Shown here: one piece after another, positions 1 through 54,545 of the stretch
Numbering within the stretch: position 1 is the stretch's first letter
Layout of the letters: each line of letters begins with the position of its first letter
Position numbers and translations under genes: made by a program
Assembly: GCF_021869535.1 (NCBI RefSeq)
Contig: NW_026262712.1
Location: forward strand, 27,218,001-27,282,000
DNA from: Mytilus californianus
Lineage: Eukaryota
Direction of reading: 5' to 3'
DNA: 64,000 bases
Notes under the pieces: generated by a model
Database searches by the model: none
Seen by the model: the letters and a program-made list of their open reading frames with translations, nothing else
What the model was told of the DNA's origin: nothing

Positions 1-83
1 CTGAACATCTTCCTCCATGTAGAGTTTGTGGAGAAAAGGCATCAGGACTCCATTATGGCGCTAATACATGTGAACCATGTAAG
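1..83 (+). CDS. NR-A coding exon 1, 3' part only (zinc finger 1: [27 protein letters not shown])
   Basis: C-X2-C-X13-C-X2-C nuclear receptor finger; phase-0 donor aag|gtaagt at 84; near-identical to NR-B 48670-48757. Confidence 0.95.
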
Positions 84-97
84 GTAAGTAACTTACA

Positions 98-166
98 CCA
101 TTTAGAGTTTGTGGAGAAAAGGCGTCAGGACTTCATTATGGCGCTAATACATGTGAACAATGTAAG
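98..166 (+). repeat. Degenerate tandem duplicate of the 3' end of the NR-A ZF1 exon, including its donor ([23 protein letters not shown]|gtaagt)
   Basis: Direct repeat of about 15-83; first Cys TGT>TTT; out of frame with exon 1. Confidence 0.9.
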
Positions 167-716
167 GTAAGTAGATGCATGAACATGAACTCAATTGTAT
201 AGTGTGACGGGATTGCTTCCCTTAGTAAATGTGTTAGATACTTAGTCAGTCGTAAGCGCTTGAGCAAAGGAAGTACTGATTTAGCGCTGTCGGTATACGC
301 GCTGCCTTGTAACACAGAGGTCCCGGTGCAAACAAGCAAGCAATCTTTTAAAGAAATTTATGCTCTCCGGTTACAATTATATAGTTTAGCATGTGGCATG
401 GATTGCGTACTGTTATATGACACTGGAACATCTAGTACTTTTTACTTAAGACTTAAGGAAAGGAGATCACATCGTCCTCATTGTTACACAAACTGAGGTT
501 TTATTAAATAAGTTAGACGGTATTCGTTAGTGGTAGACCGGGAACAAAGATCAATGTATTCTGTTGCAATTAGTTTCATTAGCTACAACTGAATGAAATG
601 CACAAAGATTATGCACTGATAAAAACAAATTATCAACTCTTACAGAACTGTTATCTATACTTTGACGTCATGAAACGGGCTTATACAAGTATACACATTT
701 TGTTATCACTACTATA

Positions 717-14794: not shown

Positions 14795-15249
14795 GTCAAT
14801 ATGATGTCACTGTGAATTATCGTGGTAAAAATGGTCAAGAAACTTCTAAATCTACAGTAATTGTATTTTACGCCTTCATGTCAAAATCAATTAGGAGCCC
14901 GGCCGTTGGTCGCCGACTGGTATTTGATTTAATAAAGACAAACCAAGGTGGTGGATATAATCGCCACACAGTCGTGTTTACCTGTCCAAGGAATGGGACA
15001 TACGTTTTCGTGTGGGTTAGACTGGTTTCTGCATATCATTCCTTTGAGTTTATGATCAATAATTCTGTGTATGGATCAACCTACATTTATAACAAATATA
15101 CCGACGGTAGCGATAGTGGTACAGTCGTTGCGAATGTGTCTAAGGGCGATAGTGTTTATGTTCGTATGCACTCTTCCTATAAAGGTATAGGTAAATTAAA
15201 TAGTAATGAACACGGCAGACCCGCATTTTCTGGTTGGTTACTGAACTAG
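14795..15249 (+). CDS. C1q-1 exon 2, globular C1q domain (secreted C1qDC, about 181 aa total)
   Basis: tttcag acceptor; gC1q motifs FYAFM, LVFD, GGGYN, FTCP-X2-GTYVF, VYVR, FSGWLL; AATAAA at 15263. Confidence 0.93.
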
Positions 15250-31612: not shown

Positions 31613-32070
31613 GTCAGTATGATGTCATTGTCAATTACCGTGGTAAAACTGGTCCAGAAACTCCTAAATCGAGAGTAATTGCATTTTACGCCTTCATGTC
31701 AAAATCAATCACGAGCCCGGGCGTTGGTCGCCGACTGGTATTTGATGTAATGAAAACAAACCAAGGTGGTGGATATAACAGCCATACGGGCGTTTTTACC
31801 TGTCCAAAGACTGGAACATACGTTTTCGTGTGGGTTGTAAGACTGGGTTCTGCATATCATTCTTTTGAGTTGATGATCAATAATTCCGTGTATGGATCCA
31901 CCCATCTTTATAACAATGGTACCGGAGGCAGTGTCAGTGGTACAGTTGTTGCGCATGTGTCGAAGGGCGAGAGTGTTTACGTTCGTGCGCACTCTTCCTA
32001 CAAAGGTTCGGGTGTAATAAATAGTGATACAAACGGTAGAACAGCATTTTCTGGATGGTTACTGAACTAG
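31613..32070 (+). CDS. C1q-3 exon 2, intact gC1q domain (about 182 aa total)
   Basis: tttcag acceptor; GYNSHTGVFTCPKTGTYVF; AATAAA at 32080. Confidence 0.95.
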
Positions 32071-34505: not shown

Positions 34506-36374
34506 ACTTACTTACTTACTTAGTCCTTGCTATGCCTTATGGCACATAGGGCAAGGACAAGTTTCCTCCATTCTTCTCGGTTGTTTGCTTTTCTTTCCAC
34601 TGTGCCCCAGGTATATCCTCTTTCCTTTAATTCATTTTCTATGGTGCGTCACCATGTTGTTTTAGGTCGTCCTCTTTTTCTTTTTCCCTCTGGTGTCCAT
34701 CTAAGCGCTACCTTGGTCATGTCTTCAGATGGTTTGCGTAAAACATGACCAAGCCAACTCCATCTCTTTTGTATCAGCAAAGTCTCCATGTCCTTGGTGT
34801 TGGTAATCTCATATAGGTCTTTGTTGGAGATTTTGTTTGGCCAGAATATTTTCATTATCTTCCTCAGACATGTGTTATGGAAGCTGGAGAGTCTGTTGAT
34901 ATCTTTCTCAGTTATTCTCCAGCACTCTGAGCCATATATAAGTACAGATAATACACAGCATTTATAGAGTCTGAGCTTGGTCTTCTTTGAAAAGGCTGTT
35001 GTGTTCCAGATGTTGCCTAATCTAATGAATGCTTATCTAGCTTTTCCTATTCTGATCTTTATATCTCTTTCAGCACCACCTTCTGTTGTTATACAACTTC
35101 CTAGGTAATTAAATGAGTCTACTGTTTCCAGCTGTTTTCCTTCTACAAATATGACAGGGTGTCTCTCTGTGCTGAAGTACATTAACTTTGTCTTTTTGGC
35201 ATTGATCTTAAGTCCAATTATTTTAGCATTTTCTCCTAGCTTTTTGGTCTTCTCCTGCATATGGTCTTCGGTATGCGATAAAAGTGCTAAATCATCAGCA
35301 TAGTCTGTGTCCTCAAGCTTGGTTCAAAGTGTCCATCTCAGTCCGGTTTTACTTTCTGCTAGGGTCGTTCTCATCACCCAATCAAAGCCAATTATAAAAA
35401 GCACAGATGACATAACACATCTTGCTTTACTCCTGATTTTATAAGGAAACTAGTGTCAGCTACAGAATTGATGGTACATGAGAAGTTTGTATAGAACTGC
35501 TTGATGAGTTGCACTATCTTACTTGGTATTCCATAGTTTCTTAAAGTTTCCCAAAGACTTTCCCGGTGTAAGCTGTCAAAGGCTTTTTCGAAGTCCACAA
35601 AATTTACAAGTAGTTTTTTCTGCCACTCATGGCACTGTTCAAAGATGTTTCGTAGGACAACTATGTGGTCTATGCAACCTCTACCTTTTCTGAAACCAGC
35701 TTGTTCTTGTCGTAGTTTCTTATCAACAGCGTCTATAATTCTTGATATAGAAATTATGCAGAAGACCTTACTTGGAATGGATAGTAAGGTGATTCCTCTT
35801 CAGTTGTTGCAGTTAGTTATGTCTCCTAATTTTGGTATTGTTATGATCTTGCCTTCAGACCAACTGTTAGGAATAACAGCTTGTTCCCATATTTTCTGGG
35901 ATACTGGGTGTAAAGTATCAGCTGCCTGCACTGGATCTATCTTAAAAAGTTCTGCATTTAGTTGGTCTATCATGTCTATGCCAGGTGCCTTTTTGTTTTT
36001 CAAGTTTTTAATGGCTTTCTGTATTTCTTGTTTTGAAGGTGGATCTGTATCTATTTCTAGGTCTATGGGTGCTTCAGGAATAATTGCTAGCTTGTCTGGA
36101 TCTTTTCGGTTAAGAACCTCTTGAACATGTCCCTGCCATCTTAAGTATTGATCTCGTTCTGTTGTTAGTATATTGTTGTTTTTGTCTTTGATTGGCATAC
36201 TTACCGTAGCTTTTTTACCACTTAGTTGTTTAGTTACTTGGTAAATCTGTCCCATTCTCTGATTTGAAGCTGCACTTTCTGCTTCTCTTGCTAGGTTTCC
36301 ATAAAATCTCTCTTGTTCTTACGTGTTGCTGTCTTTACCTTCTTGTTGCATTCTGTATATTTTGTTCTTGAAGT
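34506..36374 (-). mobile_element. 5'-truncated, frameshifted RTE-clade LINE
   Basis: RT fragments KAPGID, DFEKAFDS, LEDTDYADDLAL, WLGHVLR, RKRGRPKTTW; (TAAG)n 3' tail; candidate TSD caacat at 34500-05 and 36375-80. Confidence 0.92.
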
Positions 36375-37380: not shown

Positions 37381-37545
37381 GAATAGCGGGGCGACCCTGG
37401 TTATTACCACAAAACTCGGATCAAGTTTGAATTTGGCTGGCGTCACTTTTACGGTTCTTGAATTTGTTCCCTCATAACGTTATATGCTAGCGAGGGCATC
37501 ATCTGTGTCTCATGAACACATTCTCCATTTATTACTGATTGTCAG

Positions 37546-44744: not shown

Positions 44745-47700
44745 ACGAAATTAATAATAGAACAAGTATAATTATTATCATAAAGTGTTATTTTCATTTG
44801 AGTTATTGTTGACCTGCTTTTTTATAGTCCTTAAAAGGAACGAAATATTTGCCACTGGACGTACCAACTTTCTTCAGATACTTGCTGCTGGACGTTAACT
44901 TTCATCACATACTATAACTATACCTAAATATACATGTATTTCATTATCAAATGCTTCGTACGGTATAGTAAGCTCAGTCAATGAATGAAATAGTTGACTA
45001 AATGGAACGTCCAAGGCGTAATGGAAATTATTATTTATTGTTTAGTTGTTAATCATAAAATACATAATTTATGAAATCATTTATCCTACGTCATAACAAG
45101 CTTCGATACACATTCAATCTACCTGTATGTGTATTTGTTTATATATGATGAGAGCCATTTAAAAATCTTTCGATAGGAGTATAACAGTTTGACCGTATTA
45201 AGCAATAACTTGGTCAAATGAGGTCAGTAAACAAATTATTCACTATTCTGTGGCATTTATTTCCTTGAGCCAGTTGAGGACGTCAAGTTAAAGTTATTTT
45301 GTTATAAATTATGTTTTTAGGTTGATATTTTACAATGTCCATTTGAGACATCGTTCGTCCTAGTTTACGACTTGTTGTGATCAATGCAGTCACATTGCGA
45401 AATGTAATATATTTTTTTATCTTTTATTCTACAAATGCTAAATGCTTTAGCAATATATGTTTTATATCAAGGATCGTTGTCATACATTTTGCAGCATTCG
45501 GGTGGCTTTGGACATGTAATATAACGAGGTCTATATATATATTTATTATGTTAATTGTAATATTGATCTGTCCGTAACATAGCGACTCTGCAAAGTACAT
45601 GTATACTAAATAATCTAAAAATGTAATTACTTTGTATTGCTTGTTGCAGTTGTACCTGGGTACACGTTGATCTAAAAATAATTTCTCACATGCTTGTTAA
45701 TCACAAAAAAGCTCTTGAATTTAAAGAAGGGGAAAAGCCCTTCTTGATGTCTTTATGTCGGAGTATTGTTTTACTGTATATAAATATTTTTTTATTATAT
45801 AATAGAGTGGACATTTCTTATCTCTGAATACATATACCTCCTGAAAACAAATCAACCGAAAACTTTGTAAGATGGAATATAATTATTTCCTGTGAATCCA
45901 GAACAAACGAAAAGTAAAAAGAAGACCATGTTTTGTTTATCGGGTAACCATGCTATTTACATATCTTAATTATTTAAAATGTTAATGTTATGGTTTCTTG
46001 CGGACTGTTGTCTTGCGAACTAGCACGTTACAAAACCGGCTCAGCGTATTAGTCTGGTAGAAAGCAGGGTTCATATTCATATTACATTAACATGTTCTCG
46101 TCCTGAATATCCATTTAATTTGCCGCTGGACGTTAAACAACAATTTATCCACCATCTTACTTATGGTGCGTTTAAAAATGACAGTGAAAGTTAATTGAAT
46201 AATTTACCAGGATTACCATAACTAGACAAACATTTCGACTACATGTTTTCAAGGATATTAGCCAGGTTTAAGTAGATTCTAGTGTATAATAATGCAGCTA
46301 CGTGATATTGTTATGAAACTATTTATTTTCTTTCTATATATGTTCCTAGAAAATCACTATGATATTCCTTTTAGTACATGTTTTCCTATAGAAAACTATT
46401 GTTTCCTTGCAGTAGGTGTTCCTAGAAAGATATTATTTTCCCTTTGGAGGTATTTTATGTTTTGATTGTTTAACCTTTCAAACTTTGGTGGTTATTTATA
46501 TCCATATTTTCTGATCACTGCAAACGATATTTAATAAATTCAACAGCAAAGCAAATGTTTGTTTTTTATTTAATATCAAAGAACTGTTTGCACAAACTAC
46601 GAATTTCAAATTTTAGACATGGAAGATTCACCAAAATGTTTTTATGATTTTTGCTAAGTGACTATAAACAAAAATGCACAAAAGTCAGATTTATATTATA
46701 TATTATTACATGCATGAAATATTTACCACTGGACGTTAAACATCCAACAATCAATCAATCAATCATGTGTATGAATACTGCAAGGTTTGTCTTATATGCA
46801 GTTCAGACACGTATTTCAATTCGAACTGAACTGTTACATCAATGTTGTAGATGCAAATATTTGGTAACAAAATGTAACATGACAAACAGAGAGTATAACA
46901 AACGAAAAGTACATTCGTCAATTCCGTAATTGACCCTGTAATTAGAGAACCATTTGTAAGAGTTGTTTCCCTTAGGAGGTATATACATTTTCATTGACAA
47001 ATGAAGAGTTTGCAAAAAGAGAAAATATATCTGTGCGAAATGTGTGTAATCTTTGTTTTTGTTTCTTCAAATCTTTCAATTACTTTTAATCATTTGTTAA
47101 GCTAAACACTTTTGGTATCAATAGTTATTTTTATTTAAGTATTGGTTAAAGCGCCTACATATCATTTTTAACATATCAGGTTTTTCTTGAGCAGCAGCCA
47201 TTTTAAAACCAGTTTAAAATTGAAAAAGGGAAACAACCTGTGTGCGAAGTGTGTTATAACAGAATCAATCGATAATTGTAAATAGACAATTGAAAAATAT
47301 CAACATTTATTTAGTCGATGTAAACAATGTTCTTTTTTTGTGATTTTGGCACTTTTTATGATCACGCTGTCACCGGATGGGGCAATAGATGGGCAATAAG
47401 TGTTACCCTTGTCCGTCTGTACGTACGTCCCAAAATTGGGTTTAGTTCTCTAACTTTAGTTTGCCTCAACTAAATGTTATGAAACTTATACACAATGCTT
47501 ATTACCACAAAACACAGATCAAAGTCGACTTTGAGTGGAGTCACTTTTACCGTACTCGAGTTATGCCCCTTTATAACGTTAAATGCAAGCGGGGGCATCA
47601 TCTGTGTCCTATGGACACATTCTCCATTTAGTTCCTTTTTTATATTCCACTATCTGAAGTACCACCATTTTTGTATTGTAGTACGGATAAACAACTGCGT

Positions 47701-48340
47701 GCATTTAAAGGATAGCACATTTCGCTAGCCAAGGGTTTTGATCCAGTCCCCTCGAGGACAATGCCTGGCGACCACTGCACCAACAAAAAAATCTCATTAT
47801 CAGAATGTCATAACACATATAAACTAAGGATTTTATCCAAGGATATAATGCTAAGTTCACAACACGACATAAACATCTATGTATACACTTTTTCTATGTA
47901 TGCGAAGATCAGTTCCATCACCACAGCCATATATACACCGAAACGGTTCATGCAAACCACAAACCACGACCCATATAATGTTAATAATAAATCACTACGT
48001 AGATCACTGTATAAGTCTTTGCATTGCAGAAGTCCACTTTGGTAGAAGTATAAAAAAGCCTCCAAATGATAAATTTTACAACATATGATCAGAAATCAAT
48101 GATTCAAAGTCGGAAAGTCATGAAAAAATAATAATGTTTTGAAATTACACAAGTAAAACCATCCAAATTCCCACAAAAACATTTTGTGCGATTCACGTGA
48201 CTCTCTATTTACGTATATCATTGATGTAATTCATAACTTAAGTAGAGAATGGTGTCTAAGCGAATCTCGAGTGTTTATTTTACGAAAGTCGAAATTTGAT
48301 TATTAGATATAATTTTCAGATTGAGTGTACAGATATTATC

Positions 48341-48757
48341 ATGGATAGCCAGAATATGGATTTTTTAGATTCATCATTGCTAACTCCCGACCTAACATCT
48401 GACACAGACTTATTCTTTGGTATTGCTGACTTAGCGCTATCTGATAGCTCACCAAATCACTTATCATTTAATTCAATATGTATGTCAGTGTTAGACAAAG
48501 AGCTATCCTGTAGTTCTTCCGCAGATAGTGGTAAAGGGGAATCGGAAGATTCGGAAACAATACATAGAGGAGAATCGGAAGATTCGGAACCGGTACATGA
48601 AGAAAAATCGAAAGATTCGAAAGTGGCACAGAAACCGCCAAAGAAAAAGCATCACAAAAATCAACCGCCTGATGCTGAACATCTTCCGCCATGTAGAGTT
48701 TGTGGAGAAAAGGCATCGGGACTTCATTACGGCGCTAATACATGTGAACCATGCAAG
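48341..48757 (+). CDS. NR-B coding exon 1, copy a (A/B region + zinc finger 1); exon acceptor at 48319, exon 48320-48757
   Basis: MDSQNMDF...[22 protein letters not shown]; tttcag acceptor; aag|gtaagt donor. Confidence 0.9.
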
Positions 48758-49818
48758 GTAAGTAGATGAAACATTAACTCAATTGTATTATACAGTTTAC
48801 CATGTGGTATGGATTGCAAACTATTTTATGAGATTGGGACTACTGAAGTCTTTAACTCATTTTTTTGTGAAAAGTAGTATAACATCAGCCTCATTGTAAG
48901 AAAAACTTACTAATAGTTTATTTGAAATAAGTTTGCAGGTATTCCGAGAGGATTCACATTATATTTCAATTGAAGATCTCTGTAAAATATTTAGGGTAAA
49001 TGATGCATTTTCACATTTGTACTAAATTGACATTTACGCTTCACGAGAATTAACCATATTGTGGTTATAACTGATTCAAATCTTTCAATTACTTTTAATC
49101 ATTTGTTAAGCTAAACACTTTTGGTATCAATAGTTATTTTTATTTAAGTATTGGTTAAAGCGCCTATATATCATTTTTAACATATCAGGTTTTTCTTGAG
49201 CAGCAGCCATTTTAAAACCAGTATAAAATTGAAAAAAAAATGCCTGGCGACCACTGCACCAACAAAAAAATCTCATTATCAGAATGTCATAACACATATA
49301 AACTAAGGATTTTATCCAAGGATATAATGCTAAGTTCACAACACGACATAAACATCTATGTATACACTTTTTCTATGTATGCGAAGATCAGTTCCATCAC
49401 CACAGCCATATATACACCGAAACGGTTCATGCAAACCACAAACCACGACCCATATAATGTTAATAATAAATCACTACGTAGATCACTGTATAAGTCTTTG
49501 CATTGCAGAAGTCCACTTTGGTAGAAGTATAAAAAAGCCTCCAAATGATAAATTTTACAACATATGATCAGAAATCAATGATTCAAAGTCGGAAAGTCAT
49601 GAAAAAATAATAATGTTTTGAAATTACACAAGTAAAACCATCCAAATTCCCACAAAAACATTTTGTGCGATTCACGTGACTCTCTATTTACGTATATCAT
49701 TGATGTAATTCATAACTTAAGTAGAGAATGGTGTCTAAGCGAATCTCGAGTGTTTATTTTACGATGTCGAAATTTGATTATAAGATATAATTTTCAGATT
49801 GAGTGTACAGATATTATC

Positions 49819-50235
49819 ATGGATAGCCAGAATATGGATTTTTTGGATTCATCATTGCCAACTCCCGACCTAACATCTGACACAGACTTATTCTTTGGTA
49901 TTGCTGACTTAGCGCTATCTGATAGCTCACCAAATCACTTATCATTTAATTCAATATGTATGTCAGTGTTAGACAAAGAGCTATCCTGTAGTTCTTCCGC
50001 AGATAGTGGTAAAGGGGAATCGGAAGATTCGGAATCAATACATAGAGGAGAATCGGAAGATTCGGAACCGGTACATGAAGAAAAATCGAAAGATTTGAAA
50101 GTGGCACAGAAACCGCCAAAGAAAAAGCATCACAAAAATCAACCGCCTGATGCTGAACATCTTCCGCCATGTAGAGTTTGTGGAGAAAAGGCATCGGGAC
50201 TTCATTACGGCGCTAATACATGTGAACCATGCAAG
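49819..50235 (+). CDS. NR-B coding exon 1, copy b (exon 49798-50235)
   Basis: Near-identical tandem copy, open frame, intact splice sites; L>P, T>S and S>L relative to copy a. Confidence 0.9.
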
Positions 50236-51539
50236 GTAAGTAGATGAAACATTAACTCAATTGTATTATACAGTTTACCATGTGGTATGGATTGCAAACT
50301 ATTTTATGAGATTGGGACTACTGAAGTCTTTAACTCATTTTTTTGTGAAAAGTAGTATAACATCAGCCTCATTGTAAGAAAAACTTACTAATAGTTTATT
50401 TGAAATAAGTTTGCAGGTATTCCGAGAGGATTCACATTATATTTCAATTGAAGATCTCTGTAAAATATTTAGGGTAAATGATGCATTTTCACATTCGTAC
50501 TAAATTGACATTTACGCTTCACGAGAATTAACCATATTGTGGTTATAACTGATTCAACGCTCATATAGTCAACTACTGCACAATGTTCTGTTTGGACTCT
50601 CGATATTAATTTCCACCTTTATTTAGTTTCGCAATAATTATTTAAAGAAGAAGATGTGGTATAATTGCCAACAAGACAACTCTGCACAAGAGAACAAAAT
50701 GACACAGAAATTAACAACTATAGGTCACCGTACGTCCTTCAACAATGAGCAAACTCATATCGCATAGTCAGCTATAAAAGGTCCCGAAATGACAAATGTA
50801 AAACAATTCAAACGAAAAAAACTAACGGCCTAATTTATGTACAAAATAATGAAAAACAAATATGATACACAGAAATAAACGACAACCATGCACTGAATTA
50901 CAGGCTCGTGACCTTGTGTGGTTATTCTAAAAGAGTTCATGAATGCTAAATTAAAGTATAAACTCTGCAGACTCATTTACAAATCAAAGGACTTGTTAAA
51001 TTTGTTAGTGGTAGACCGGGAACAAACATCAATTAATTCCATCAAAAAAACTTTCATTACCTACAATTGAAATGCACTAAAGTTATGCACTCTTACAGAA
51101 CCGTTATCTATACTTTTGACGTCATGAAATGAGCTTATTCATGTATAAATGTTTTGTTGCCATTCATGTAAAAAGACCTAACATACACTATTGGAATAGT
51201 ACATTATGGATATACAGTTACTAGGCAACCATTCTCAGATTAGGCTAATGTTTGATTCCTATTGTTTTGAATATCATTTAATTCAATGATTAAAGAAAAA
51301 AATACTTTTAACACTGACATCTCACCCCTCCAAAATTTGCTCTTAGTGGTGTCTGACGAGAGATCTGACATACAGATGACCATAGTTTTATAACCAAGTT
51401 AACTCTGGGAGTCTTATGAAAAACGCGAGAAAACGTAAATATGGCTTTCAATATCTATTACTGCAACAGCACATTTCAGGAAACGGTATATGATTTTGGT
51501 GAATGTTACAGGAAAATGCAAATAAAGCTATTTTTTCAG

Positions 51540-51696
51540 GGTTTCTTTCGTCGCAGCATAGTCAAGATAGAAAAGAAAAATGAGAAATACGTTTGTGCTA
51601 AAGGAGATGAATCATGCAAACTTGGGACTGGAAAACGGACAATGTGTTCCTATTGTAGATATAAAAAATGTCTAGATGTAGGAATGTCACACGGAG
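51540..51696 (+). CDS. NR-B exon 2 (zinc finger 2)
   Basis: 157 nt as in NR-A exon 2; GFFRRSIVKIEKKNEKYVCAKGDESC...CLDVGMSHG. Confidence 0.95.
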
Positions 51697-53327
51697 GTAA
51701 GATAAATGTGCTTATATCGAATGTTTAAGTGAAGCAGGATCTACTTAATCTGCTGGAGCACATTCCGTGGGATTCGTGTTGCTCAGTCTTTAGTTTTCCA
51801 TGCTGTGTTGTGTATGCTGTTGTTTGTCTGTTTGTCGTTTATCGTTTTTTTTTGCCATGGCATTGTCAATGTGTTTTCGACTTCTGAGTTTTTCTATCCC
51901 TTTGGTATCCTTTGCCGCTCTTTTCTGATTTAGTTGAGGGCCTACTGCCTTGGTTGTTGCTATGTGACCTCAGTGATAAATTAGGTATAACAAAATATAT
52001 ATATTTGGGTTTCGTATCCTTTATTATTTCTGGCAGCATTATTCGAGCTTACGAGATGTACGATTGGTTGTACGGGATGTATAATTACATAGACACCTCC
52101 AGTCTAAATTTTGACTTTAAGGATGTAGTTAGGTGAAATTAAAAAAGCTAGAATTTAAAATTGATACTATAAGTCAGAAGAGCATTAGTAAAGGAACAAA
52201 TTAAGCTAAAAATATTGATAGGTTGAGCTCCTTCTTGCGATATTTGATTTTTTTTACATGGCGGGAAGAGGCTTACTCGGACTTTAACCTTATATTTAGC
52301 ATTGGCATTATTTGGGTCTCAAATCGTAAGAAAAAAAAACAAACTAGAATCTGCTAAAATTTTGGTAAAGACCTTTTTATGAACTATTGAAGTCTTCTGT
52401 GAAAAGAATAGTGGGTTATATGGGGCAAAATATTTTACCCTGTATCAAAGGAAAAAACCCAAGAAGTCCAAACATCTGACAAAAATTCATAAACCTATTC
52501 TTAAATCCGATGTCGCATTTTGACGTGGTATACATTTCTTACACGTATCATTTTGTTAACATATATTACCTTATAATTCTGAAAATGAACTGAACATCAT
52601 AAAGTTCCATACCAAATATAAAATCACACCTTAAAACCGAATTTGAGTAATATGTAGAAACCTCTCGGAATTTTGGGTCCGCAATGCTCGACAACCTCGC
52701 ACTTTATTGGGTCTTTTTTTTAAACTTTTTTGATTGCAGCGTCATTGATGAGTCTTTTGTAGATGAAACGTCATTATGCAGCATACCATCAACTCCCCTG
52801 TGTGGGGAAATGACAAAAGAAAACGCAAGGCTTATTTCATGACATCTACCTAACAATCTACACCTAGTAAAAAAAAATACAGATGAAAGATCATTATTTG
52901 ATTGAGACCAACATAGAAGATATTTTTGTTATTGTCTGTTTGATTTATTTACGGACGTGTGTCGAACCACGTGTTATCGACCGTCATAGAAAATACGCCA
53001 ATCATTTCATTCTAAATTCAGTTGATTGCGACTCGTTAGCGCCTGCTGGTAACCTTCATAATAGAATTAGCATCAACCATCCATCTTTTGTGTGTGAATG
53101 AGAAAGAAGGAAAAGGGAGGGGGGCTTTTTATTAAAAAAATAATGTTTTGATTGTGGAAATGTGCGATACAAAGTATAATTTTCATTTTTTTTTTCGTTT
53201 TAAAAATGTAAAGTTTGCAAAGGTTATATTCTGAAAATTAAAAAGCTCTGAAAATTGCTAGAAATCTTAGATGTATGCATATTCTAAAAATTCTTCAAAA
53301 TGTCAGAACGATTGGTCAACTTCAAAA

Positions 53328-53565
53328 GGGGCCTCGATGGCCGAGTGTTCTAAGATGTTCAACTACTGTATCACTAGCCTGACACGTGTGGCAGCCTGCG
53401 CTCGACTCCAATCTTAGGTTACATGGATTGTCAGTTTTCCTGCCGAATATCGGTGGTTCTCTCAGAGTACTCCTGCTTTCTCCACCAAGAAGACTGACCG
53501 CCACGAAATAGCCAATAGTGATGAAAGTGGCGTTAAACACCAATCAGTCGACCAATCAATCAATT
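53328..53565 (+). mobile_element. tRNA-derived SINE, same family, in NR-B intron 2
   Basis: 10-bp TSD aacttcaaaa at 53318-27 and 53566-75; (aatc)n tail. Confidence 0.85.
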
Positions 53566-53771
53566 AACTTCAAAAGACTATATGTCGGTGGATATTTTGA
53601 TTTAATGTACAATCATGTACATGATGTAGGGGTTGCGTTTCTGTTTGTCCCGAGTAAAAAACTCATACCCACAACCAACACAAAAAAGATGAATAGTCTG
53701 ACTTTTGTCTGACGTTTAACCCTGTCTGTAGTCTACATTTTATGCTATTTCTACTATCGTCTTAATTTCAG

Positions 53772-54001
53772 CTATTAAAATTGGAAGGTATACCCACGAA
53801 AAGAGAACCAAAGATATAACAGAGGTCAACAAATTAAAACTAAAAGAAAATCAGACAGTTGATACGACATCAGTTGATGTAACGGAACAGGAAGTTGATG
53901 AATTAGTGGCGCGTTTGATTGTTATCCAGGAAGAATTCTGTGCTGATTTTAGAACATGTTTTCAACCAGGTGGCCTTCTTGAAAGGCAGACGTCTATTTA
54001 T
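53772..54001 (+). CDS. NR-B exon 3 (CTE/hinge)
   Basis: 230 nt, canonical AG/GT; AIKIGRYTHEKRT...LLERQTSIY. Confidence 0.92.
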
Positions 54002-54317
54002 GTAAGTTGAGTTAAATGAGAATTATATATTTATTTAGGGGTTTATACATACTGAAAGGAGATAGGGCCAGTTTTTCCATTTCACTCAGAGGGTTAAAAT
54101 TAAAAATTGTGAAAACCTACTAGCATTTGAATATTATAAGAGTCTATATAGTATACTTTTTTTTGTTTGAATTGTTTTAACTTTTTTATGTCGTGTTTTT
54201 AATAATGTACCATAGTGTATCGATTTTGCTCATTCTTGAAGGCTATACGACGACCTAATATAGTTGCTTACAACAACGTCATTTGGTCTCTGGTGGATAG
54301 TTGTCTCACTGGCAATC

Positions 54318-54545
54318 GGGGCCTCGGTGCCCGAGTGGTCTAAGTAGTCGAACTACTGTATCACTAGCCTGCATACACTGAGGTTGTGAGTTCGAATCTA
54401 GCACGTTCGACTCCAATCAATATTCACTAGGATTGTCAGTTTTCCTACCGGGCACTCCGGCTTCCTCCACCAATAAAAACTGACCGCCAAAAAATATCAC
54501 AATAGTGCTGAAAGTGGAGTTAAACATCAATCAACCAATCAATCA
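54318..54545 (+). mobile_element. tRNA-derived SINE in NR-B intron 3
   Basis: A/B boxes and aatc tail; flanked by tca(c/t)tg(g/a)caatc duplication; orthologous to 6396-6567. Confidence 0.82.

Follow-up and report, generated by a model that had tools for sequence, protein, structure and literature searches.

An apparent tandem duplication of the first coding exon of an NR1-type orphan nuclear receptor gene in Mytilus californianus, probably a young structural polymorphism

Introduction

In-frame tandem duplications of exons are known from human genetics, for example in DMD and BRCA1. The duplication described here, in which the first coding exon of an orphan nuclear receptor gene of the California mussel Mytilus californianus occurs twice in succession, resembles these human duplications in being kilobase-scale, joined at a microhomology and probably polymorphic, and in enclosing a whole internal exon with its splice sites while the reading frame is kept. 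It departs from them in the kind of gene affected, a mussel orphan receptor, and in the content of the doubled exon, which holds a start codon and half of a DNA-binding domain (DBD).

Among the nuclear receptors themselves, the 2DBD receptors (NR7) are monophyletic across many phyla and carry two complete DBDs, i.e., four zinc fingers (PMC1810520, PMC10497141). The P-box pair that characterizes them is EACKK-EGCKG or LPCKS-EGCKK, and in Mytilus they are represented by separate 2DBD-NRA and 2DBD-NRB1 genes elsewhere (PMC10497141). The longest protein predicted from the locus studied here (isoform X1) shares with these receptors, which are found in molluscs including Mytilus, the presence of more than two zinc modules N-terminal to a single ligand-binding domain (LBD), but the gene is NR1-type and doubles one finger together with the A/B region. 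The NR1P group of mollusc receptors (PMC4070562) offers a further likeness, in that the DBDs have PPAR, ROR and Rev-erb as their nearest solved relatives and the genes of this locus form a mollusc-specific tandem paralog family; the difference is that exon duplication is not described for NR1P genes.

Results and discussion

Receptor genes in the window

The window, i.e., the whole 64-kb stretch of DNA that was analyzed, lies on M. californianus scaffold JAKFGE010000006.1 at ~27.26 Mb and contains two paralogous, collinear receptor genes, for which the RefSeq naming is 'NR1D1/2-like'. Gene A extends from position 1 to ~11600 and encodes XP_052065230.1 (P0163), and gene B, with the RefSeq name 'NR1D1-like', extends from 48320 to ~59150. 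Gene B is an NR1-type orphan nuclear receptor gene. Its products have the C4 zinc-finger DBD followed by an LBD by which members of the nuclear receptor superfamily are recognized; P0167 and P0255 match the Pfam profile zf-C4 (PF00105) at 84 and 104 bits and Hormone_recep (PF00104) at 64 bits, and single exons of gene B each match Pfam profiles too. The DBD is NR1-like, with PPAR-delta, PPAR-gamma, ROR-gamma and Rev-erb as its best solved relatives.

Downstream of the duplicated exon, two further exons were placed on the forward strand. Exon 2 (51540..51696), which is covered by RNA contigs, encodes the remainder of the recognition helix (GFFRR...) and zinc finger 2 and matches zf-C4 positions 25-69. 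Exon 3 (53772..54001), which encodes the hinge, was placed by tblastn of P0255 and by an RNA contig of run X15 that joins 51694 to 53770 with a 2-nt ambiguity. Two C1q-domain open reading frames (14812-15249 and 31696-32070; PF00386, E 1e-16 to 1e-18) occur in the stretch that separates genes A and B, and on the reverse strand at 35800-36255 there is a 151-aa open reading frame resembling a retroelement protein fragment.

Structure of the duplication

The first coding exon of gene B is present twice on the forward strand, as exon 1a (48320..48757) and exon 1b (49798..50235), each 438 nt in length. Exon 1a comprises a 21-nt leader, an ATG at 48341, the A/B region and the four cysteines of zinc finger 1, ending after CEPCK; exon 1b is its duplicate, with the ATG at 49819. 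Both copies are open and in phase 0 at both ends, with the acceptor ...aattttcag and the donor TGCAAG/gtaagtagat, and each matches zf-C4 profile positions 2-24. The interval between them (48758..49797, forward strand) measures 1040 nt, has GT-AG ends and is an intron in the RefSeq isoform X1 model. Four nucleotides differ between the two exons, namely 48367 A/G, which is synonymous, 48381 T/C (L21P), 48557 A/T (T80S) and 48618 C/T (S100L). Within the exon, a forward-strand 33-nt tandem repeat (48532-48619, with its twin at 50010-50095) encodes an 11-residue acidic repeat (GESEDSExIHR), with ~2.7 units in gene B and one or two extra units in paralog A and M. galloprovincialis; the copy number of this acidic repeat varies across paralogs and species.

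The exon copies lie within two duplication units arranged head-to-tail on the forward strand. Unit 1 (47066..49074, 2009 bp), as delimited by pairwise alignment with unit 2, contains intron sequence and exon 1a and extends 317 nt into the downstream intron. Unit 2 (49075..50552, 1478 bp) is followed by a shared TTCAA that carries the homology to 50557, in agreement with the contig ends of run X1 described below. This 5-nt TTCAA microhomology is found on the forward strand at all three breakpoints (47066-47070, 49075-49079 and 50553-50557), which fall 1254 nt upstream and 317 nt downstream of the exon, none of them at a splice junction. Over 1483 aligned bases, there are 10 substitutions and one 1-nt indel between the two units, i.e., ~0.7% (99.3% identity), and on such a comparison a chance origin of two 1.5-kb units would be impossible. 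No further copies of the duplicated unit occur elsewhere in the 64-kb window. Only unit 1 contains a 530-bp segment (47228-47757, forward strand), which includes a 135-nt repeat that is found also at 37398-37531.

Much of this had been described in an earlier sequence-only reading, and its account of two open, phase-0 438-nt copies with intact splice sites around a 1040-nt GT-AG interval, of three differing codons (L/P, T/S, S/L) and of TTCAA at the duplication junction agrees with the sequence in each respect. The upstream deletion that it placed in copy 2 is likewise present as a segment absent from unit 2, although its size is 530 bp and not the 531 bp given. To the right of the units, very-high-copy transcribed repeats occupy ~50650-50923, 51700-52760, 53500-53680 and 54236-54400, with summed contig depths of 10^4 to 10^6 in the DNA runs; the first of these starts ~100 nt past the right duplication breakpoint.

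Evidence for the duplication in genomic reads

Reads and contigs were aligned to 48900-54400, a region that takes in the junction, unit 2 and the right flank, so that the reads of both units pile on one copy. Run X1 is probably the reference animal, as three flank contigs together show 0 differences to the reference over 688+311+143 nt. In this run, one contig begins at exactly 49075 and another stops at exactly 50557, and a 31-mer map of the window identifies these two positions as the first and last bases common to the 'flank' and 'unit-to-unit' paths. Contig ends at both positions therefore indicate that both paths exist in the reads, as at a fork in a de Bruijn graph.

The depths of the contigs are in keeping with this, with the limit that the DNA runs are Logan contigs, in which minor alleles are dropped and which give no true copy number. 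Unit contigs of run X1 had depths of 85.7, 99.7 and 104.7, flank contigs had depths of 49.4, 55.8 and 44.5, and one reference-identical contig stood at 25.1, haplotype-specific contigs having ~25. The M. californianus assembly was made with hifiasm from 81.4 Gb (about 49x) of 13-kb HiFi reads for a 1.65-Gb genome (PMC9710001), and this amount of data, together with the two peaks of the k-mer spectrum of the species (PMC9710001), fits depth classes of ~25 for one haplotype, 50 for the diploid state and 100 for four units. The depth classes thus imply approximately four units in the run X1 diploid, with the duplication probably on both haplotypes. None of the listed run X1 contigs bridges 49074 and 49080; the presence of the junction in the reads follows from the contig ends, from the depth and from a residual of ~18x in the first bin (48900-49083), which is roughly what a short junction-specific contig would add. 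Run X1 is possibly the assembly's own data and in that case not independent, yet it excludes a junction without read support.

These measurements bear directly on the alternative that assembly concatenated the two haplotypes of a highly heterozygous animal, of which only one had the 530-bp segment, each chromosome having a single unit. Heterozygosity in the species is 2.73% (PMC9710001), the copies differ by 0.7% and an indel as alleles could, run X1 contigs show a single allele at each differing site and a second animal (run X2, below) is apparently single-copy, all of which would suit such an artefact. In contrast, the contig ends at exactly 49075 and 50557 require a second continuation at both boundaries, and the unit depth of ~100 stands against ~50 for the reference-identical flanks and ~25 for haplotype-specific contigs. 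In addition, the window has 0 N runs, i.e., it is one contig without a gap, the entire 3.5-kb duplicated structure is fully spanned by 13-kb HiFi reads (read length from PMC9710001), and a clean 5-nt microhomology junction is not expected from an arbitrary concatenation. Read depth had been proposed beforehand as the check on this artefact, and with the unit at ~2x flank depth in run X1 we consider the artefact improbable; the duplicated sequence seems to exist as such in the genome of the probable reference animal and not to be two concatenated haplotypes.

Run X2 represents another animal from another study. One of its contigs passes from 329 unlike bases into 49075-49236 and then into 200 unlike bases, and a second extends from 50357 to 50693, crossing the right boundary uninterrupted. 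Unit depth in this run was 8.6-16, a ratio of ~1:1 to the diploid depth of ~11.6 at a site where two haplotype contigs of 5.8 each overlap. With the identity of the unlike contig flanks in runs X1 and X2 (left flank and 530-bp segment) taken from their geometry, the run X2 animal seems to be single-unit, with the 530-bp segment present in that unit. A polymorphic duplication, absent from at least one other animal, is the probable reading, as run X2 contigs with single-copy depth pass both boundaries. The comparison of presence and absence across individuals that had been suggested for this locus points to both states, duplicated in run X1 by depth and contig ends and single-copy in run X2.

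Two local irregularities were seen in the contigs of both animals. At 49084-49267 and 49820-50003, the summed contig depth of runs X1 and X2 was ~1.3 to 2 times that of the listed contigs, an excess that probably comes from 31-mers common to exon 1 of paralog A, outside the window. Contigs of both runs also break at 49937-49957, a stretch that encodes NHLSFNSICMS and is common to paralog A, and this break is probably a paralog k-mer fork.

Age and polarity of the changes

The residues L21, S80 and S100 are found in the M. coruscus ortholog (inside P0166), in M. coruscus P0038, in M. galloprovincialis P0168 and in paralog A, and the ancestral bases at 49859, 50035 and 50096 are present in DNA runs X1 and X2 as well as in RNA runs X15 and X21. 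From the outgroups and the run alleles together, S80T is derived in exon 1a, and L21P and S100L are derived in exon 1b, i.e., one private amino-acid change in the first copy and two in the second. When exon and intron sites are both counted, ~four private changes fall in unit 1 and four or five in unit 2, with the 530-bp deletion counted among the latter. The run X1 contigs carry neither copy's private alleles, a point against a real duplication; minor alleles are dropped from Logan contigs. The private derived changes in each copy, together with a third, ancestral-type unit in run X1, also argue against a concatenation of two haplotypes.

At 49236/49239, the contigs of runs X1 and X2 depart from the copy-2 reference for 125-200 unlike bases, and the 530-bp segment is therefore probably ancestral, with its absence from unit 2 a deletion. 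Insertion of a transposable element into unit 1 was also considered for this 530-bp difference and was rejected, as contigs of both runs carry unlike sequence at the site.

Divergence between the exon copies (4/438, 0.9%) is not below that of the intron (6-7/1045, ~0.6%), and three of the four exon changes alter residues; taken together, these give no sign of constraint. The unit copies are closer to each other than two random alleles of the species, and by such sequence comparison the duplication event is judged young. The M. coruscus ortholog model does not contain the duplication. That model lies within P0166 (695 aa), in which an upstream receptor DBD and a CDC50-like piece are fused to the gene B ortholog via the IECTDII acceptor; P0166 probably represents fused gene models rather than a receptor with two DBDs.

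Transcripts and splicing

RefSeq contains three forms of the gene B product. Isoform X1 has 656 aa and includes both copies (XP_052065221.1, XP_052065222.1), and isoforms X2 and X3 have 510 aa each, with copy 1a only in X2 and copy 1b only in X3. The three hypothetical splice forms of the sequence-only reading are thus already in RefSeq, as computational models; its in-frame joining of 1a to 1b to exon 2 holds and is identical to the 656-aa isoform X1 model, for which tblastn gives the order exon 1a, exon 1b, exon 2 and onward. The joined exon forms analyzed here are the stored RefSeq proteins.

Expression of gene B is documented by raw RNA reads (run X21) and RNA contigs (run X15), both from other animals. 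A 468-nt contig of run X15 has 28 nt unmatched to the genome at its upstream end, followed by 49796-50235, which indicates that the tttcag acceptor is in use and that an untranslated exon lies upstream. In further contigs of this run, exon 1 continues directly into exon 2 at 51540, and exon 2 into exon 3 at ~53772. In run X21, no RNA reads were found at 49084-49797, the part of the unit upstream of the exon, which places the upstream exon outside the shared part of the unit and leaves copy 1b without a visible leader or promoter of its own. Given an untranslated exon upstream, the duplicated exon is internal and the copies are consecutive internal exons. The earlier suggestion that they act as alternative first exons runs counter to both observations, the exon spliced onto the acceptor in the RNA contig and the lack of RNA upstream of the exon in the unit.

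The RNA of runs X15 and X21 carries ancestral alleles only, and hence bears on other animals and not on the reference allele. In run X21, the ancestral allele was found in 21/21 reads at 49859 and 11/11 at 50096, with A at the polymorphic synonymous site 49845 in 21/21. Per-base depth over exons 1, 2 and 3 in this run was ~15, 16 and 18 (~1:1:1), so that exon 1 is not doubled and there is one exon 1 per transcript in that animal, which has neither copy's private variants.

An alternative account takes the duplication as real but allows one copy per mRNA, through mutually exclusive use or constitutive skipping, with the 656-aa isoform X1 as an annotation by-product of reads mapping to both copies. 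It predicts carriers with 510-aa receptors only, differing at no more than three A/B residues. Alternative use of tandemly duplicated exons is common, isoforms X2 and X3 are also present in RefSeq, and exon 1b has a proline at an otherwise invariant leucine, all of which lend this account some weight. Protein comparisons point the same way, as among the best 150 of 412 matches in an exhaustive search with exon 1a, only P0038 (518 aa) and P0001 (189 aa) fell below 1e-30, neither with a doubled exon for the A/B region and zinc finger 1, and P0255 was the sole form with this doubling among the 256 proteins compared. Within the same best 150 of 412 matches, the family representative was a 518-aa single-copy protein, and the other multi-stretch matches were unrelated multi-DBD or fused models. 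Yet no mechanism for exclusivity is visible, the intron being 1040 nt long with near-identical acceptors and the same donor, and joint inclusion is in frame and hence not removed by nonsense-mediated decay. Moreover, in known disease alleles with tandem exon duplications, both copies are usually included. Overall, we regard one copy per mRNA as rather unlikely, while still deserving serious weight.

Several other searches touched the exon and its junctions. When exon 1a (139 aa) was used in a word search, the matches were to relatives at no more than 70% identity, with none to M. californianus fragments, and an exact-protein look-up with the exon-1 open reading frame and the intronic open reading frame of the unit returned no record. 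Patterns for the 1a-to-1b RNA junction and for the DNA junction gave 0 matches in the metagenome collection, as expected for that collection. The splice-joint and loose-end tables were swamped by the high-copy repeats at ~50650-54400, with transposon joints.

The predicted long form

We give slightly better than even credence to an explanation in which the duplication is real, young and segregating, ~2.0 kb in size and joined at TTCAA, with both exons included by default and with neutral or mildly deleterious consequences. By this explanation, a ~2.0-kb tandem duplication joined at the 5-nt microhomology would have doubled the first coding exon of gene B, and the pre-mRNA of carriers would contain two near-identical consecutive internal exons, 1040 nt apart, each with its own acceptor and donor. 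As with tandem exon duplications known from other cases, inclusion of both would be the default outcome, yielding the 656-aa isoform X1 with the order A/B region, lone four-cysteine module, A/B region, full DBD and LBD; skipping of either copy would yield the normal-length 510-aa isoform X2 or X3. Only through the second copy, which continues into GFFRR and finger 2, would a working DBD be formed, and the first copy would be a 146-residue N-terminal appendage on an otherwise normal receptor.

The sequence of isoform X1 is consistent with such an appendage. Its first CEPCK runs into IECTDIIMDSQ... and not into GFFRR and finger 2. The recognition helix, which in the alignment to 2ENV (PPAR-delta) is continuous as CEGCKGFFRR, is interrupted by the exon boundary. 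The first module accordingly keeps its four cysteines but is missing that half of the helix which contacts DNA, along with the second finger, and Pfam finds in isoform X1 one complete zf-C4 (263-335) and a 23-residue fragment that corresponds to profile positions 2-24. A three-finger protein, as predicted by RefSeq, is possible.

This arrangement differs from that of the 2DBD receptors, in which both DBDs are complete, since isoform X1 has one full zf-C4 and a fragment. Neither of the P-box pairs of those receptors is found in isoform X1, where CEPCK is present in both copies and is followed by GFFRR after the second only. The proposal that the locus captures an early step toward a multi-DBD receptor is overstated, and its link to the 2DBD receptors is weak, as only the first zinc module is doubled, cut in the middle of the recognition helix, and the 2DBD receptors are an old clade.

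In line with that proposal, carriers would produce the long form, and its extra zinc module or doubled A/B region would confer a new function, in DNA binding, dimerisation or activation, for which the allele is kept by selection as a step toward a multi-DBD receptor. The long form is indeed in frame with its cysteine pattern intact, and, judging by depth, both haplotypes of the reference animal may carry the duplication. Against this, without GFFRR and finger 2 the first module has no two-helix domain core, as judged from the alignment to 2ENV and others and from the Pfam fragment. The residue-changing nature of three of the four exon differences, at 0.9% in the exon compared with ~0.6% in the intron, gives no sign of constraint, the duplication is missing from run X2 and from the M. 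coruscus ortholog model, and 2DBD receptors are an old clade and not recurrent products of such events. A new function maintained by selection is for these reasons very hard to credit. We consider it highly improbable, too, that the allele is common in California mussels, with both exons spliced in and a stable 656-aa receptor whose target choice or partner binding is altered through its extra zinc module or doubled activation region; should a common allele yield such a receptor, it would be a living example of zinc-module gain by exon duplication.

The evidence instead fits a copy-number variant that is neutral or mildly deleterious and does not constitute a new kind of receptor, probably an ordinary young structural polymorphism that is neutral. 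If carriers make the 656-aa form, the locus would be a natural segregating experiment on a half-duplicated DBD in a nuclear receptor, and a case of domain gain by exon duplication caught early; unless the long form is expressed in carriers, the duplication is of modest interest. At present its weight is mainly for annotation, as isoform X1 rests on a variant missing in at least one other animal, and in surveys of mollusc nuclear receptors this isoform is not to be counted as a new receptor architecture.

Finally, a smaller duplication of the same exon was observed in paralog A, where window positions 1-200 contain a 91-nt tandem copy of the last ~70 bases of the exon and its donor. The first copy has CEPCK with the donor after position 84, and the second (92-166) has CEQCK with the donor at 167. 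This second copy precedes sequence orthologous to the gene B intron and is 82 nt out of register, so that use of its donor would shift the reading frame.
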